Part shown: positions 13,094-58,900 of the stretch, piece by piece
Position numbering within the stretch: position 1 is the stretch's first letter
How the letters are laid out: every line of letters begins with the position of its first letter
Source: Monocercomonoides exilis PA203
Taxonomy: Eukaryota; Protista; Preaxostyla
Length of the DNA: 64,000 bases
NCBI GenBank assembly: GCA_001643675.2
Contig: LSRY02000006.1
Span: forward strand, 186,001-250,000
Direction of reading: 5' to 3'
Notes under the pieces: generated by a model
Seen by the model: the letters and a program-made list of their open reading frames with translations, nothing else
What the model was told of the DNA's origin: nothing
Databases searched by the model: none
Made by a program: the position numbers and the translations under genes

Positions 13094-13138
13094 CCAAAAA
13101 ATGAAATAGTATGTCAAGTTTTGATTGTCAAATTCAAT

Positions 13139-13241
13139 AATTTCCAAAATATCACCCATTCTGTAATTGTTGTATTATTTTCAATTTTTCATAAATTGAT
13201 TGCGAACAAAATGCAGATCAAAATAAAAATTTGCGTTTTTT
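13139..13241 (+). promoter_or_regulatory. Putative external promoter blocks of tRNA-like RNA copy 1
   Basis: 13195-13236 is 42/42 identical to the reverse complement of 19103-19144. 13139-13169 is 28/31 identical to the reverse complement of 19170-19200. The 25-nt spacer between the blocks has diverged but keeps its length. Confidence 0.55.
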
Positions 13242-13350
13242 GAGGATCACTTAGTCTAGTGGTATGATTGGGTAGAATTTGGTCTATCAAGCATTGATGA
13301 TTTATCGATGATCTTTCCAGGTCGAAGGTTCGATTCCTTCAGTGATTCTC
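13242..13350 (+). ncRNA. tRNA-like Pol III-type RNA, copy 1 (no canonical anticodon arm)
   Basis: A box TAGTCTAGTGG. B box GGTTCGATTCC lies inside a perfect T arm (GAAGG-TTCGATT-CCTTC). AGGTC variable loop, 10-bp terminal stem GAGGATCACT/AGTGATTCTC, and TTTTT at 13351-13355. A paralogue lies at 18989-19097. Confidence 0.85.
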
Positions 13351-13355
13351 TTTTT
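13351..13355 (+). terminator. Oligo-T RNA polymerase III terminator
   Basis: TTTTT immediately follows the terminal stem. The same run follows copy 2 (18984-18988, minus strand). Confidence 0.7.
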
Positions 13356-14023: not shown

Positions 14024-15863
14024 ATGGGTGATTCTTTTTGAAAAGTCACAAATGTTTAATTTTCAAATACTTCAAAATTTTCATATTTTGCTAAATATAT
14101 TGTTAGCAAATATCAAATTTAACTTTAATAGAATCTATTCCTTGAAAATGTTATTTCAAACATTCTTGAGGAGATTTGTGAGCTGAAACAGAAATATGAG
14201 CAAAATATGAAATTTTTGATTTATTTGAAAATTAAACATTTGCGACTTTTCAAAAAGAATCACCCACATGAAAGAAAAATGGCTTATTTGAGGCATCTCC
14301 GTCTTAGAAAAAGCAAAAACATTTGTTTTTTTAAACAATTGTGATAGTTGTTGCATTTGATTTCAAAAGGTTTTCCCAATGACAAACAACATTTAATAAA
14401 AACAACACCTCGAAAAAAGTTATGATTTCAAAAATAATTGCCCACACGGAGTGAAAATATTTTGTTTCAGGCATTTTCATTGAAAAATTATGCACTTTTC
14501 ATTAACATTTTGAATTCAAAAAACACAATAAAAATGAGACCATTTTTTGACGTTCGTGAAATGCTCCAATTCCTTTTGTTTTTATTTCAATGAAGCCTGT
14601 TTTCGGATATGAAAATCAAAAAATTTTTTGAAATTTGTGAAAGTGATATTAAGTTACGAGTGAAACTATTTTTAGTGATTTAAGCAAAAAAAGCATGAAA
14701 GTCCGTATTTTCCCCCACACAGTGTATTATCATTATCTGTCTTAATCATATTTTTCGTTTTGCCAATTTTTTTCACCTCTTTTTCTTTCATTTTCCATCG
14801 TATGCAATCACAGGGCATAATATGTCTAAATTTTTTTGAAAAGTTCCTTTTGTTTAATTTTCAAATTAAATAAAAATTTCATATTTCAATCAAATTTTCG
14901 TTTCCACTCACCAACTTTCACCAGTTTGTAAAATTTCACATGGTCAAGATTTTGTTTTCATGACAACGAATTTTGGAAAGTGGGAACAAAAATTTGATAG
15001 AAATATGACATTTTTATTTTATTTGAAAATTAAACAAAAGGAACTTTTCAAAAAAATTTAGACATATTATGCCCTGTGATTGCATACGATGGAAAATGAA
15101 AGAAAAAGAGGTGAAAAAAATTGGCAAAACGAAAAATATGATTAAGACAGATAATGATAATACACTGTGTGGGGGAAAATACGGACTTTCATGCTTTTTT
15201 TGCTTAAATCACTAAAAATAGTTTCACTCGTAACTTAATATCACTTTCACAAATTTCAAAAAATTTTTTGATTTTCATATCCGAAAACAGGCTTCATTGA
15301 AATAAAAACAAAAGGAATTGGAGCATTTCACGAACGTCAAAAAATGGTCTCATTTTTATTGTGTTTTTTGAATTCAAAATGTTAATGAAAAGTGCATAAT
15401 TTTTCAATGAAAATGCCTGAAACAAAATATTTTCACTCCGTGTGGGCAATTATTTTTGAAATCATAACTTTTTTCGAGGTGTTGTTTTTATTAAATGTTG
15501 TTTGTCATTGGGAAAACCTTTTGAAATCAAATGCAACAACTATCACAATTGTTTAAAAAAACAAATGTTTTTGCTTTTTCTAAGACGGAGATGCCTCAAA
15601 TAAGCCATTTTTCTTTCATGTGGGTGATTCTTTTTGAAAAGTCGCAAATGTTTAATTTTCAAATAAATCAAAAATTTCATATTTTGCTCATATTTCTGTT
15701 TCAGCTCACAAATCTCCTCAAGAATGTTTGAAATAACTTTATCAAGAAATTGATACCTTTAAAGTGAAGTTGGATACTTGTTAACAAAATATTTTGCAAA
15801 ATATGAAAATTTTGAAGTATTTGAAAATTAAACATTTGTGACTTTTCAAAAATAATCACCCAT
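14024..15863. repeat. Nested AT-rich palindrome / foldback-like element, centre 14943.5
   Basis: Arms 14150-14866 and 15021-15737 appear to be exact reverse complements (the identical ORFs 14156..14356- and 15531..15731+ reflect this). Imperfect extensions run outwards to 14024/15863 and inwards to 14908/14979, leaving a spacer of about 70 nt. Confidence 0.95.
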
Positions 15864-16682: not shown

Positions 16683-18601
16683 CTAAAACACGATTGCTTT
16701 TTCAACTTCAATTATCTCGTCTTTTACTCTATCCGATTCGCGTAAATTATTTCCTTTCCCACTAAACTGGCCATCTTTCCCTCCTCCTTTTCCTTCAACA
16801 ATTGCACAAACCCGTTTCCCCATAATAGCCACCCAGTCTTTTGCCTTTGGCGATGAGTCAGTTGTTGAAACGAAGAAATTCCCTGAATGTGGAAGTGCAG
16901 GATTTGATGGACAAAGCGGAGTATAAGTTATAATGTATCGCAAGTTTGTGGATTTTTCCTTTACAAAATGTTGAATCAAAGGGACAATTGTTGCTTAAAA
17001 ACAAAACACATCGCATCGCAGAAATAAAAAAAAACATGACAATTAAAAAATAATAAATGCATTGTGCAAACATGGAACACGATCCAAATGAAGATGTACA
17101 GGCATAAGGTGAACATCTTTCTCTTCAATGCTTTCCTTTGCGTTTTGCTCTTCATCGTGGTTCTGTTCTTTTTCAATACAATTGCTCAGATGAGATCTGT
17201 TAGAAGCTTCATTTATCATCCGCTCAGCAAGCACTTCAGCATACTCCTCCTCAATCCGTTTTTTTTCTTTTCTGGTATTCGATTCCTTCTCTTGCAACAA
17301 GGAAATTAGTTTTTCATGTTCTGGAGGAGGGCCAGATAAAAGTGATGTCAATGTGCGTTCTCGTTTAATCTAGAAAAAATAAAATGATAGAGAAAATAAG
17401 GTTAGAAAATAGCGAAAACAAAAAATAAAATGACAATAAAAAAAAAAAAACGCAAACCATAAATGTGACTTCTTGATTCAATCTCTCTCCGCTGAGAAAC
17501 CATAATCGTTGAACTCCACTCTTTACATGATCAATCTCTTTAGTGTTTTTAAAAGTAATTCAATGAAAGAAAAAGAAAAAACATAAAAAAATATTTAAAA
17601 ATAAAAAAGAAAACACAAACTTATAAATTTTATCATTCTGAGTTGCGACAAGCTTGAAACATGTGTTCCGCAGCAAGTTGATGCATCAATCTTATTTTAA
17701 TTGAATATGTTTAAAATAATAAAATTTTATGAAAATCATTCATAATTGTTCAGAAAAGCAATGCTTTCAAACATCTTTAATTTCTACAATTTGTACATCA
17801 GATACGCCATCTGGAATTCCCCGAGATCTAATTGTAAATTCAAGTGACGATGGATCATTATACTGAGCTCGCGTGATTTTGTGAATAATGACGGGATTAT
17901 TATTTAGAATTGCTTTGTTGCACAAATCGTCAAGCATCGAGATGGTTGAATCTAATTGCATCGATAAATCTGAAGAGGCTACTCGTGAGGAGGATGGACA
18001 ATCTGGACAAGTGGAGGAAGACGCAGATAATGATGATACCACCAACTTTTCTGAAGAATTATTGATTTCTTGAGATGAATTCTCAGAATTCTGCGAAGAT
18101 TTTTCATTTTCATGTAAAGTTTTTGGCTTTATTAATGATAAATCAACAGAACACGGACCGGCTTCTGTCATTTGCCAGGAAACTGTTTGGAGATTAAAAT
18201 GATCCATTGAAATAGCAGAAATAAGATGCTGTGCTGAATGCTGTTGACTATGATCAAATCTTATTTTTCCGTTCACTACGCCTATGACAACTTTCCCTTC
18301 CTCCCACTTCGATGGAAGTCGAAGAAGATGCTCAATATTTCCATCAACCCTTTTCTTTATTGCTTCAACTGCAATTCCATCAAGCTGTATTAAAATTTAA
18401 ATCATTAAGCTATTATTCTCAGTGAGCTCATACTGTTCCCTTATCTTCGAGTTGTCCACCATCTTCTGGGCGAAAAAGCGTTTTCAATAAAACAACACTA
18501 AAGACTTCTCCAAGTTCTGCGCTGGATCCTTTTGTCTTCTTTTTACCATTCTCAACTTTGATGCAACTAACAACAGTTGATGTGAAGCTCAAGTCTTCCA
18601 T
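16683..18601 (-). CDS. AlaX/AARSD1-like free-standing alanyl-tRNA editing protein with C-terminal DHHA1-like domain. Six exons, approximately 18601-18434, 18384-17773, 17690-17621, ~17537-17458, ~17369-17072, ~16994-16683
   Basis: Motifs TLFRPEDGGQLEDKGT, HSAQH (HxxxH zinc ligands), IDASTCCGTHV (CxxxH), GVQRLWFLSG and C-terminal GKGGGK...FSGKG. All introns are GT-AG with compatible phases. No aminoacylation domain. The start codon is uncertain. Confidence 0.88.
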
Positions 18602-18988
18602 TTTTCCTTGTTTTTGCAAAATTAAAAAAAAAATTCTGTATCAAAAATTTCTAAATTATTCATTCAATAATTTTTTAATGTGAACAACAATTCTTTTCAT
18701 GGTACTTATCTGAATGATTGATAAACAAATATTTCAATGCATGGATTCTTTATATTTTGAATATTTCTAATAATAAGATTTCGATAAGTCAAATGAAAAC
18801 AATCAGAAAAGATTTTTCCATTCAAAAATCAAATTTGTATGCAAAGCGTTTTGTTCACAAAAATTGCAGAAACAAATCAATTTAAAAATAATCGCTTTTG
18901 GAGCAAACAGAAATTAAATTATTGTTTTTCATGAAATGTTCATTGGTTGAAAAATTATTTTCTTTCAAAAAAAAAAAAAAATCAAAAA

Positions 18989-19097
18989 GAGGGTCGCTGA
19001 AGGAATCGAACCTTCGACCTGGAAAGATCATCGATAAATCATCAATGAAGAGTAGACCATCTTCCACCCAATCATACCACTAGACTAAGTGACCCTC
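18989..19097 (-). ncRNA. tRNA-like Pol III-type RNA, copy 2
   Basis: The reverse complement reads GAGGGTCACTTAGTCTAGTGGTATGATTGGGTGGAAGATGGTCTACTCTTCATTGATGATTTATCGATGATCTTTCCAGGTCGAAGGTTCGATTCCTTCAGCGACCCTC, then TTTTT. It is 97/109 identical to copy 1 with no gaps. Confidence 0.85.
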
Positions 19098-19200
19098 AAA
19101 ACACGCAAATTTTTATTTTGATCTGCATTTTGTTCGCAATCAATATGAAAGAGTATGAAAAATTTGATTCAATTACATCATGGGTAATATTTTGGAAATT
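19098..19200 (-). promoter_or_regulatory. Putative external promoter blocks of tRNA-like RNA copy 2
   Basis: Gapless counterpart of 13139-13241, with the same two conserved blocks. Confidence 0.55.
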
Positions 19201-19375
19201 CGTAAATTCTACTATAACCTCGCTGTCGACATTCAAAATTGAGCATAAACACATAATTTTGAGTGATTCTGAAAGCAGTCACAATCGGATATTTCAGAAC
19301 ATAAACGAGATAAGGAAAAAGCGAAAGTCTTCCGTAATTAACTTTTCTTCAATAATATAGTGAAAAATCCACTTT

Positions 19376-55974: not shown

Positions 55975-58900
55975 TCCAAAATTGCATTGACAAAACAACT
56001 CAGGAATGTTTTTTTTTGGAAATTGTGAAGATTTCATGTTTGCTGATGAATAACAAGAGATGGATGTTCACTTTCATTTCCATTGTCCGAATATTTGCAA
56101 AACATTAAAATTATACTGGTGATTTCAATTATATTTTGAATTCATTGACATTTTCGGTGTTTGAATGAAATCCTTGTTGTGTTTTCATCTGCCACTTTTG
56201 ATACTGTTATGTTCGGTGAAAAGTTGTCAACAATAAAACGAATTGGAGAAAAAAGCCCCCTCCTGACTGTTAAGAAGGACAAACATCTGAAGCTTTCACC
56301 ATTGTTTGGGTTTGTCTCCAAGTATTTCTTTCAGGATTCAAAAAAAAATTGCTGTTGTTTTTATTTTATTTTTATCAGAAAATGGTTGACCTCAAAAAAG
56401 GATCACGCAGATGAAGTTTCTGGCATTCAGCAAAATCACAGTCTATCACAAGAAAATTTTCAAAAAAATATGAAAAATTCCCTGGTTTTTGAATGATGGA
56501 ATGTGTTTTCAACAATCGAATAATAATTATTGGTGTGTGTGTACATTTTTGAAGGAAATAAAAATGGTTATGTGGAACATTTCTAGCACATTCCATAAAG
56601 CAAAAAAGATTCGTTTGGTGATTTTTGTGTTTCACTTGCTATAAATGTCAAATTATTTTCGAAAAGTCATTTCTGATAAAATGTCTGGGAAAGCAAAAAA
56701 AATTGGATATTCTGTAAATTTCAAGTGCCAACAAGTCATAGATCACAACTCTGTTTATCGTAGGTGAACAGGGTCATTTTTGTTTTTTATTCATTACAAT
56801 TTGTTCCATGTTGTTGTGAGACATAACGAGCCAGTTCCAAAAAACTGAATAAAATAAATCATTTTCAGTTCAACATCGAAATCGAAACAATTGGGCGATT
56901 CTTTCTGATAGAATATCGAAATATTTTTAACAAAAATTTTGAATAAAAATTGGAATGTTGCGCCAGAAGTTTTGTCCCAGATGGGGAAAACAACAATGGC
57001 AAACTTCCATTATTGTTTGCAGCATTCGTTGGTTTGCTCTTTAATTAATAACTTTGGACAGAACAATTTGCCACACATTGGAATATCAATATAATCAGCT
57101 GAAGGAAGCAATCAATTCTTTAAATGGAAATACAAAAATATCATTTCAACAATAATCACCAAATAATGACTTTTCAATAAAAAATGAATAAAATTCATTT
57201 TTTTTTTAATTTTTGAAACAGTTTTCAACGGAAACGCTTCACGCTATTGACCGAACCACTTCAATCTATTAGTTAGATTCCAAAAAGAAAAATATGTCCC
57301 CTCAGAAAATATTTTTTATTTTTTTGACCGAAATAAAATAGTTAATGAGATTGATCAATCGAAAAAGTATTTTTGCAACTGCAAAGGCTAAGGCCTGTCT
57401 TTCATTACATTTGCCCAATGGTTGCCATCACTTCTGGAAATGGGTCGAAATGCTGAAGAGACGCTGCGCTGGGGTTGATTTATGCTGCTGTTAATCTTTG
57501 CAATGAAATTGAGATTTCACCGAGCACAGCCGAGACATGCAAAATGCGCTTGATGCGGCGGTGGTGCATGCGATTTTGTTTTCAGAGGAATGGAATTATT
57601 AACAGAGAAACATTCATGCGACGATGAATAAATTGACAATAACTGAAGATGTCTTTTATTGGGCCTGCTGAAGGAAACGGAAAGTGACCCAATGTCGAGG
57701 ATGGGGGGGCCATTTTGCATTTGTTGAGTGTGGGTAGCAGTACCACACATGCAGTTGTCGAACCCATCTTTTTTGGATTGCTTGAGAAAAAAAGAAAAAA
57801 TCATTTGAAGAAAAAGACGATGCAAGTGTTGCTGCGCGGACATGATCGTTTTTTTCGTGCAACTGCCACATGCTATTTGTTTCAAAGAGGAAATGAGTGG
57901 TGGACGCTTTATTGCCAAATAACGCTGGGTTTCACGGAATGGATGAAAAAGCAAACTACTGGAGGCGCCCAGCGGCTGTGGTGTTATTTTTGGAGCAAAA
58001 AAGGGACGGCAAGAATAAAGATGCTATAATTGATTTTGTGCTCCGCAATTGCGACCCAAACAAGCGATGAAGAAGCCACGATTCGAGTTGAAACATCATC
58101 ATTTTTTATTTTTTTGGCCGACTTGTTGAATGCACTGCTCGAATTGTTTGCTAACGGCTCGGGAGGAACATGCTTTGAGTCTGGGACACGAACGGGAGGA
58201 TTCCGTCGTATATCTATTTTTGACCTTCGGATTTGGAGAGGCGTGAAAAGCAGCAAAGCAAGGGAGTTGCTCATGGAAGGGGCATTTGCGAAGCTGGGAA
58301 TGCTCGAGCCGACACGAGGCAGCAAGGTCGAAGGGATATTCGATTTTCTTTTTTTTTGGTGCATTTCCAATCAATTGGTCATCTGAGGGTTTTGGCTCAA
58401 AAGGCTCAAATGGATGGAATCCATGAAATGGAGCATCATTCATTTCAATACACATCAGACAACCTTTTATTTTCTCTTGAAAGTGCTTCATTCTATCTGA
58501 AGAAGCAAAGGCAACAGCGAAGCAGAAATAGAGAGAGAGAGAGAGAAAAACATTTGCCAAACATCTTTATTATTTATGATTTGAGGAGGCATTTCGATTT
58601 TCATTCCTGAAAATTGGATCAAAAGCGTTTTCGTGAAGCGCTCAGCAAAACGGACTTGAGGCGAGTCATTTTTATTGATTTATTGGTGGCAGGATGCAGA
58701 ATTGCGATGACACGAAGGGGAAAAGCAAAGCTGGAGGTTTTGGAAGCCAGAAGGATTTTGTGTTTTTCATCAGTGTTTCATTCTATCGCTTGATGTGTGA
58801 GCGGCAATGCGAATCTTGCCCGATCTTTGTTTTGGAGAGAAAAGAAATGCATTTCTCTCTCTCTGTATATGTGCATGTGTTACAATTCAATGGAAGAATT

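Follow-up and report, generated by a model that had tools for sequence, protein, structure and literature searches.

The window analysed here is a stretch of 64,000 nt of contig LSRY02000006.1 from Monocercomonoides exilis PA203, and positions are numbered from its first letter unless another contig or locus is named. The window contains two copies of a tRNA-like gene (Table 1), and a third copy is found elsewhere in the genome. Copies 1 and 2 align without gaps and differ at 12 columns (5, 33, 37, 38, 46-50, 102, 105, and 106). The sequence and the alignment bear out the earlier note on this DNA, which had reported two gapless 109-nt copies with 12 differences at these coordinates.

The segment between copies 1 and 2 carries a putative alanyl-tRNA editing gene and a palindrome. 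The editing gene, referred to below as AlaX-like, encodes an HxxxH motif and a glycine-rich C-terminal motif, and an exon-by-exon search gave a weak match to PF01411 in one of its exons (E 3e-4). Copy 2 lies ~370 bp upstream of this gene on the same strand, and copy 3 has no such neighbour. Two pairs of the mirrored ORFs in the palindrome have identical translations: 14156-14356(-)/15531-15731(+) and 14672-14818(-)/15069-15215(+). Copy 3 is flanked by a 2538-aa ORF without Pfam matches on one side and by a RasGEF gene on the other, and no neighbour is common to all three copies. When synteny was sought through the neighbouring 1193-aa protein, a paralogue from the same species (MONOS_9966) was the only sequence found.

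Table 1. Features of the tRNA-like genes, their upstream regions, and the segment between copies 1 and 2. Positions refer to the window except where a locus identifier is given.
Feature	Position	Strand	Remarks
Copy 1, tRNA-like gene	13242..13350	+	109 nt; starts at the G of leader GAG, ends at the C of trailer CTC
Copy 2, tRNA-like gene	18989..19097	-	109 nt; convergent with copy 1, 5.6 kb apart
Terminal stem, copies 1 and 2			10 bp: 7-bp acceptor stem plus 3 pairs between leader GAG and trailer CTC
Hairpin 1, copy 1	13271..13288	+	6-bp stem, 6-nt loop ending in UGG; minimum-energy fold of the insert
Hairpin 2, copy 1	13292..13310	+	7-bp stem, 5-nt loop; identical in copy 2
Hairpin 1, copy 2	19050..19069	-	7-bp stem, 6-nt loop
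Hairpin 2, copy 2	19029..19047	-	Same sequence as hairpin 2 of copy 1
T5 run, copy 1	13351..13355	+	Directly 3' of trailer CTC; likely Pol III terminator
T5 run, copy 2	18984..18988	-	Directly 3' of copy 2
Alternative stem, copy 3	L003 1544-1588	-	No counterpart in copies 1 and 2
Proximal upstream block, copy 1	13195..13241	+	47 nt, one difference between copies 1 and 2
Proximal upstream block, copy 2	19098..19144	-	
Distal upstream block, copy 1	13139..13169	+	31 nt, three differences between copies 1 and 2
Distal upstream block, copy 2	19170..19200	-	
AlaX/AARSD1-type alanyl-tRNA editing gene (putative)	16683-18619	-	Multi-exon; between copies 1 and 2
Near-perfect palindrome	~14024-15863		Mirrored ORFs; between copies 1 and 2

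Copy number in the genome

A covariance model of the family was built from all three copies and searched against the whole genome (82.3 Mb in 101 contigs). The model found the three copies alone, at 116-132 bits (129 bits for copy 1 and 132 bits for copy 2), and the next-best matches, at 38-40 bits, were the two canonical tRNA-Pro(CGG) genes. Copy 3 is located at G000:C60:57662-57766 (57651-57784 in the BLAST search of the genome) and is 76% identical over the aligned part; although diverged, it keeps the architecture of copies 1 and 2. This, along with the Rfam tRNA scores given below, argues against a chance resemblance. The covariance model and genome search proposed in the earlier note thus returned three copies in total and no decaying multi-copy element. 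The copies are best read as paralogues that make up one small family, not as a dispersed repeat.

Architecture and fold

The D arm, which includes the A box, the AGGTC remnant of the variable loop, and the T5 run are present in all three copies. The T arm of copies 1 and 2 has five perfect pairs and a canonical T loop. In place of the 17-nt anticodon arm of a tRNA, these two copies have 49 nt between the D arm and the AGGTC remnant. Every element previously described was found: the D arm, AGGTC, the perfect T arm, the oligo-T, the 10-bp terminal stem, and the 49-nt insert with two hairpins.

The insert of each copy folds by itself into two hairpins, and the two-hairpin module is 45-49 nt long across the three copies. 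Hairpin 1 has a stem of 5-7 bp and a 6-nt loop, and loop positions 1 and 4-6 (A..UGG) do not vary among the copies. At the place of hairpin 2, copy 3 has a hairpin of 6-8 bp that is unrelated in sequence to that of copies 1 and 2. A genome search allowing up to 3 mismatches (<=3) gave no further copy of hairpin 2 and no antisense match to it. The RNAalifold consensus, calculated from our own structure-guided alignment of the copies, is a five-armed cloverleaf with the topology of a class II tRNA. The z-scores for thermodynamic folding are modest, from -0.6 to -2.05, and the support for the hairpins therefore comes from the comparison of the copies, folding energy aside.

Descent from tRNA-Pro

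The 16-nt sequence of the D arm occurs exactly 12 times in the genome, nine times in tRNA-Pro genes and three times in the family. The nine tRNA-Pro genes are canonical and lack introns (UGG, four genes; CGG, two; AGG, three), and since they cover all of the proline anticodons, proline decoding is independent of the family. It had been proposed that the D arm and discriminator resemble those of eukaryotic tRNA-Pro, and the likeness turned out to be an identity with the genome's own genes: the D arm and the AGGTC loop are the same in the family and in all nine canonical tRNA-Pro genes, with the discriminator C common to both. The canonical genes also match the family in the T loop and in having a T-run terminator. 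These features show that the family descends from a tRNA-Pro gene.

The family differs from canonical tRNA-Pro in the sequences of the acceptor stem and T stem and in the replacement of the anticodon arm by the two-hairpin module. The canonical genes, for their part, have neither the GAG/CTC pairing between leader and trailer nor the T5 run of the family, and its upstream blocks are missing from them as well.

Decoding capacity

The Rfam tRNA model (RF00005) gives copies 1, 2, and 3 scores of 36.4, 34.7, and 32.2 bits, respectively, against a gathering score of 29. The scores come from the acceptor, D, and T arms alone, and the anticodon arm is aligned as a deletion together with an insert of 47-49 nt. 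An Rfam scan of the whole window at gathering thresholds gave no match, as the locus was missed by the filters. A sensitive Rfam scan of the locus returned the generic tRNA model and sub-threshold chance matches to C/D snoRNA models; no other family was matched, as the earlier note had anticipated. A C/D-box reading of hairpin 2 was rejected because the D box is absent and the motif is missing in copy 3.

ARAGORN found no tRNA in the window in its default mode. When introns were allowed, each copy received a different identity, namely Ile(GAT), Ser(TGA), and Val(CAC), with implausible introns at differing positions, and no consistent tRNA identity emerges. The possibility of an intron was also examined by enumeration. 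Each single segment whose removal leaves 17 nt was excised, and the remainder was accepted as an anticodon arm if its stem had 4 or more pairs and enclosed a 7-nt loop with U33. No anticodon arm was obtained for copies 1 and 2, which agrees with the earlier claim that no U33-type 7-nt anticodon loop can be built, and one poor solution was obtained for copy 3. Schemes with two introns were rejected by reasoning, as they require a 3-nt intron. As a separate observation, copy 3 has the option of a different hairpin that overlaps hairpin 1, with a perfect 5-bp stem and a 7-nt loop (U33, triplet CAC, A37).

The family resembles the intron-bearing tRNA-Pro(UGG) genes of other eukaryotes, which agree with it in the D arm and variable loop and likewise have a long insert separating the two. 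In those genes, however, the intron lies at the canonical place after position 37 and its removal restores a perfect arm, whereas no excision does so in the family. Metagenome sequence was searched in a single pattern scan for tRNA-Pro-like genes with long inserts. The scan returned intron-bearing tRNA-Pro alone, in the form of 12 ordinary eukaryotic tRNA-Pro genes, and no relative of the family beyond this genome.

These results bear on the alternative that the family makes a decoding or aminoacylated tRNA by an unusual route, either through one or more non-canonical introns or by using hairpin 1 as the anticodon arm (6- or 8-nt loop, UGG) and hairpin 2 as a long variable arm. All three copies score above the Rfam tRNA threshold, the discriminator C and a UGG in the loop of hairpin 1 are retained, and the five-armed topology is that of a class II tRNA. 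In addition, tRNA-Pro(UGG) genes of other eukaryotes often contain introns of 18-45 nt at 37/38, and the alternative stem of copy 3 presents the triplet CAC in a 7-nt loop. That hairpin is confined to copy 3, however, and copies 1 and 2 yield no canonical arm after any single excision. At the place that corresponds to U33, the three copies have U, A, and U, and the loop of hairpin 1 has 6 nt. The linkers misfit the tRNA L shape: the one that follows the D arm has 2-3 nt, and the one that precedes the T arm has 13 nt in copies 1 and 2 and 8-9 nt in copy 3. The three ARAGORN calls conflict with one another, and four canonical tRNA-Pro(UGG) genes exist. An unusual decoding tRNA is thus very unlikely in our judgement. 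As far as sequence can show, the family is a structured, selected RNA gene derived from tRNA-Pro that is unable to decode.

Compensatory change and constraint

The differences between the copies were examined for their effect on pairing. The count took in the terminal stem, D arm, hairpin 1, and T arm of the three copies, and 93% of the cells are paired, compared to 36-50% when the partners are slid by 1-3 columns. Both partners have been substituted in five pairs, of which three belong to the terminal stem and two to hairpin 1, and one cell is broken in each of two pairs. The observed compensation was matched by 7 of 500 shuffles, a covariation statistic that is weak because there are only three sequences. 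Between copies 1 and 2, A5-T105 is replaced by G-C, G4-T106 is replaced by G-C, and A8-T102 becomes an A-C mismatch. The pair changes described in the earlier note, including this single mismatch, are correct on the alignment, and its claim that the fold was kept through compensatory change is upheld by the five double-sided pairs and the high proportion of paired cells.

The 12 columns at which copies 1 and 2 differ are confined to the terminal stem and to hairpin 1 with its linker; none is in the D arm and none is in columns 51-99. As inverted repeats 5.6 kb from each other, these two copies could undergo gene conversion. The invariance of the D and T arms could also reflect selection on the DNA, as sites for TFIIIC/TFIIIB, instead of selection on an RNA, and constraint at the level of the DNA applies to the A and B boxes regardless.

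This constraint is the starting point for a second alternative, in which the copies are tRNA-Pro pseudogenes that are kept as DNA elements. TFIIIC/TFIIIB bound to them would act as a chromatin boundary or a local regulator, and the AlaX-like gene and the palindrome, which copies 1 and 2 bracket, are one place where this could apply. Any RNA made from the copies would have no function. The most invariant parts of the family are exactly the A-box and B-box regions, copies 1 and 2 converge and bracket a 5.6-kb segment, and ordinary tRNA-Pro genes already serve every proline anticodon, all of which agree with such a role. However, it leaves unexplained the five pairs restored on both strands in the terminal stem and hairpin 1 as well as the upkeep in copy 3 of a hairpin 2 of unrelated sequence. 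The conserved GAG/CTC pairing sits outside the A and B boxes, and copy 3 is solitary, between a large ORF and a RasGEF gene. We regard maintenance as a DNA element as fairly unlikely.

Upstream blocks and the duplicated unit

Two blocks upstream of the gene are conserved between copies 1 and 2 (Table 1). The proximal block holds an A/T-rich, TATA-like stretch ~10-22 nt before the leader GAG and a T run that abuts the gene. Proximal upstream identity is 94% between copies 1 and 2, compared to 49% for shuffles, and 58-64% with copy 3. The spacer between the proximal and distal blocks is ~27 nt long and differs at about half of its positions. Copy 3 has the proximal part alone (T run, A/T-rich stretch, and leader GAG), and the distal block is absent. 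No other gene in the genome was found to have the motif of the proximal block upstream of it, and the remaining near-matches are in unrelated sequence.

Identity over +1..+8 is 75-88%, and it is at the shuffle level past +8 and past -110. If the duplicated unit comprised only ~220 bp, the flanks may never have been homologous, so they do not make a clean neutral standard. At a distance of 3 nt outside each outer end of the copy 1/2 pair there is a 6-bp direct repeat, AAATTC (13130-13138 and 19201-19212); it could be a target-site duplication or a chance occurrence in A/T-rich DNA.

In a third alternative, the family would be a mobile element of tRNA origin. The copies would belong to a SINE or form the terminal inverted repeats of a transposon with the AlaX-like gene as its cargo. 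Copies 1 and 2 do form inverted repeats of ~212 bp around the 5.6-kb segment, with the direct repeat, recognized by eye, outside both ends. On the other hand, the genome holds three copies in total and copy 3 is solitary. There is no LINE-like or poly-A tail, the terminator is directly 3' of the gene, the conserved upstream promoter block is one that SINE copies would not carry, and the differences between copies are compensatory and not random. A tRNA-derived SINE is ruled out by the copy number, the placement of the terminator, and the compensatory pattern; a mobile element of any of these kinds is extremely unlikely.

Comparison with known tRNA-like RNAs

M. exilis has selenocysteine machinery (PMC6759080), and the canonical tRNA-Sec gene that we found at G000:C30:184971-185057 (87 nt, 69.9 bits, UCA anticodon, TATA box at -33 to -23) fits it. 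The family is similar to class II tRNAs and tRNA-Sec in having a five-way junction with a second hairpin at the place of the long variable arm, and it shares with tRNA-Sec an A/T-rich element upstream of the gene. It differs from them in the 6-nt loop of hairpin 1, in the lack of a conserved U33, and in linkers that are too long. The acceptor/T stack of the family is 10/5 (7/5 if processed) with a 4-bp D stem, compared to 9/4 and a 6-bp D stem for tRNA-Sec. A tRNA-Sec identity (RF01852) was rejected, as the canonical gene is elsewhere and the family has no aligned UCA.

Vault RNAs are Pol III transcripts of ~100 nt with tRNA-type A and B boxes plus upstream elements, a terminal stem, and a variable centre. 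The boxes, the terminal stem, and the variable centre all recur in the family, which also has a putative terminator, but it differs from vault RNA (RF00006) in keeping complete D and T arms and hence the full tRNA elbow. In Y RNAs and adenovirus VA RNA the 5' and 3' ends are paired and followed by an oligo-U tail, and VA RNA also has internal A and B boxes. The family is similar to Y RNA (RF00019) and VA RNA in the build of its terminal stem and has no kinship with them in sequence or in Rfam. Neither a Vault nor a Y RNA model of Rfam matched the locus at E up to 10. When the genome was searched exon by exon, the TROVE domain of Ro60/TEP1 (PF05731) was not found, although it was matched in control genomes, and the Vault repeat (PF01505) and MVP shoulder (PF11978) were not found in searches run without a positive control. 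The comparison with vault and Y RNAs made in the earlier note therefore stands as a conceptual one: the general build agrees, and membership in either family is unsupported, with no Rfam match and no TROVE domain found.

In trypanosomatids, the tRNA-derived, non-decoding RNAs sRNA-76/sRNA-85 are RNP components that compensate for a truncated Alu domain of 7SL. The family is likewise a tRNA-derived, non-decoding candidate small RNA of a protist. M. exilis has two full-length SRP RNA genes (298 nt) that align to model positions 1-299, including the 5' Alu helices (2-4). The Alu domain is complete and a tRNA-like substitute is thus not needed; a partner of the trypanosomatid type was rejected for this reason.

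Taken together, these comparisons address the alternative that the family is a known tRNA-like Pol III RNA, namely a vault RNA, a Y RNA, or an SRP partner of the trypanosomatid type. A build similar to that of vault RNA, with A/B boxes, a terminal stem, a variable centre, a length of ~110 nt, and an oligo-U end, is consistent with this idea. Against it are the missing Rfam matches and TROVE domain, the Vault repeat and MVP shoulder domains that the searches without a positive control did not find, and an SRP RNA that retains its Alu helices. We consider that membership in any of these known classes is highly improbable.

Proposed RNA and its possible function

We place somewhat better than even confidence in the reading that the family is a selected, functional tRNA mimic that does not decode and is made by Pol III, and it is probably a new tRNA-shaped non-coding RNA. 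The A and B boxes, together with the T5 run, are the sole grounds for naming Pol III. A look for sequencing runs that contain the locus gave four DNA runs, all from a single study, and no RNA run. The transcription, RNA ends, processing resistance, and any binding partner that are described in this section are predictions from the DNA.

In the proposed mechanism, Pol III would use the inherited A box in the D arm and B box in the T loop, aided by the upstream block that is specific to the family, and would stop at the T5 run to give a transcript of ~110-115 nt. The transcript would fold as a five-armed cloverleaf consisting of the terminal stem, D arm, hairpins 1 and 2, and T arm, with hairpin 1 at the position of the anticodon arm and hairpin 2 at the position of the variable arm. 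The D-loop GG and the T loop are unchanged, and the tRNA elbow should thus form. Pairing of GAG with CTC would lengthen the acceptor/T stack to 15 bp, leaving a paired 5' end and a 3' oligo-U tail. Such a stack should hamper RNase P as well as RNase Z in processing the transcript, and it should favour a stable end of the La type. Since an anticodon arm cannot form, the RNA would act as a mimic of tRNA or a scaffold for tRNA-binding proteins, in which the conserved A..UGG loop would be displayed by hairpin 1 and the differences between paralogues would lie in hairpin 2.

A more specific version of this mimic can be imagined, although we hold it to be distinctly unlikely in its full form. The family would be an undescribed class of stable, five-armed tRNA mimics in an amitochondriate eukaryote that has kept the elbow and the prolyl marks (discriminator C and UGG loop) and lost decoding. 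ProRS or another tRNA-handling protein would bind or charge the RNA, which would serve as a regulator, a decoy, or an amino-acid donor outside the ribosome, and hairpin 2 would provide specificity to each paralogue.

Small RNAs that are derived from tRNA and have taken on other jobs are found in a few lineages and include vault RNA, BC1, mascRNA, and the trypanosomatid SRP partner. To our knowledge, almost nothing has been reported on such RNAs in metamonads. The family is an unusually clean case, as the parent tRNA is unchanged in the same genome and the three copies have diverged enough for compensation to be seen. If the family is expressed, it would be a new non-coding RNA family for a model organism of life without mitochondria and a tractable example of a tRNA gene that was repurposed while the Pol III promoter and the elbow were retained. 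If it is not expressed, the family would indicate that tRNA-like DNA can stay conserved for other reasons.

Other small RNA genes of the genome

The U6, SRP RNA, and tRNA-Sec genes of M. exilis have clear TATA boxes, yet they are without the upstream blocks of the family. A promoter common to the family and to U6/SRP RNA/tRNA-Sec was rejected on this ground. Upstream of both SRP RNA copies (L099 1484-1781 and L100) there is a common TATATATA box at ~-35, along with a conserved ATCCCCTAAT element at ~-65. Another tRNA-like sequence with similar D and T arms occurs at three places, L061-L063 (G000:C91, ~1075316, 1077321, and 1239832). It forms part of a repeated element with upstream flanks that match perfectly for 50 nt or more, and it is unrelated to the family.
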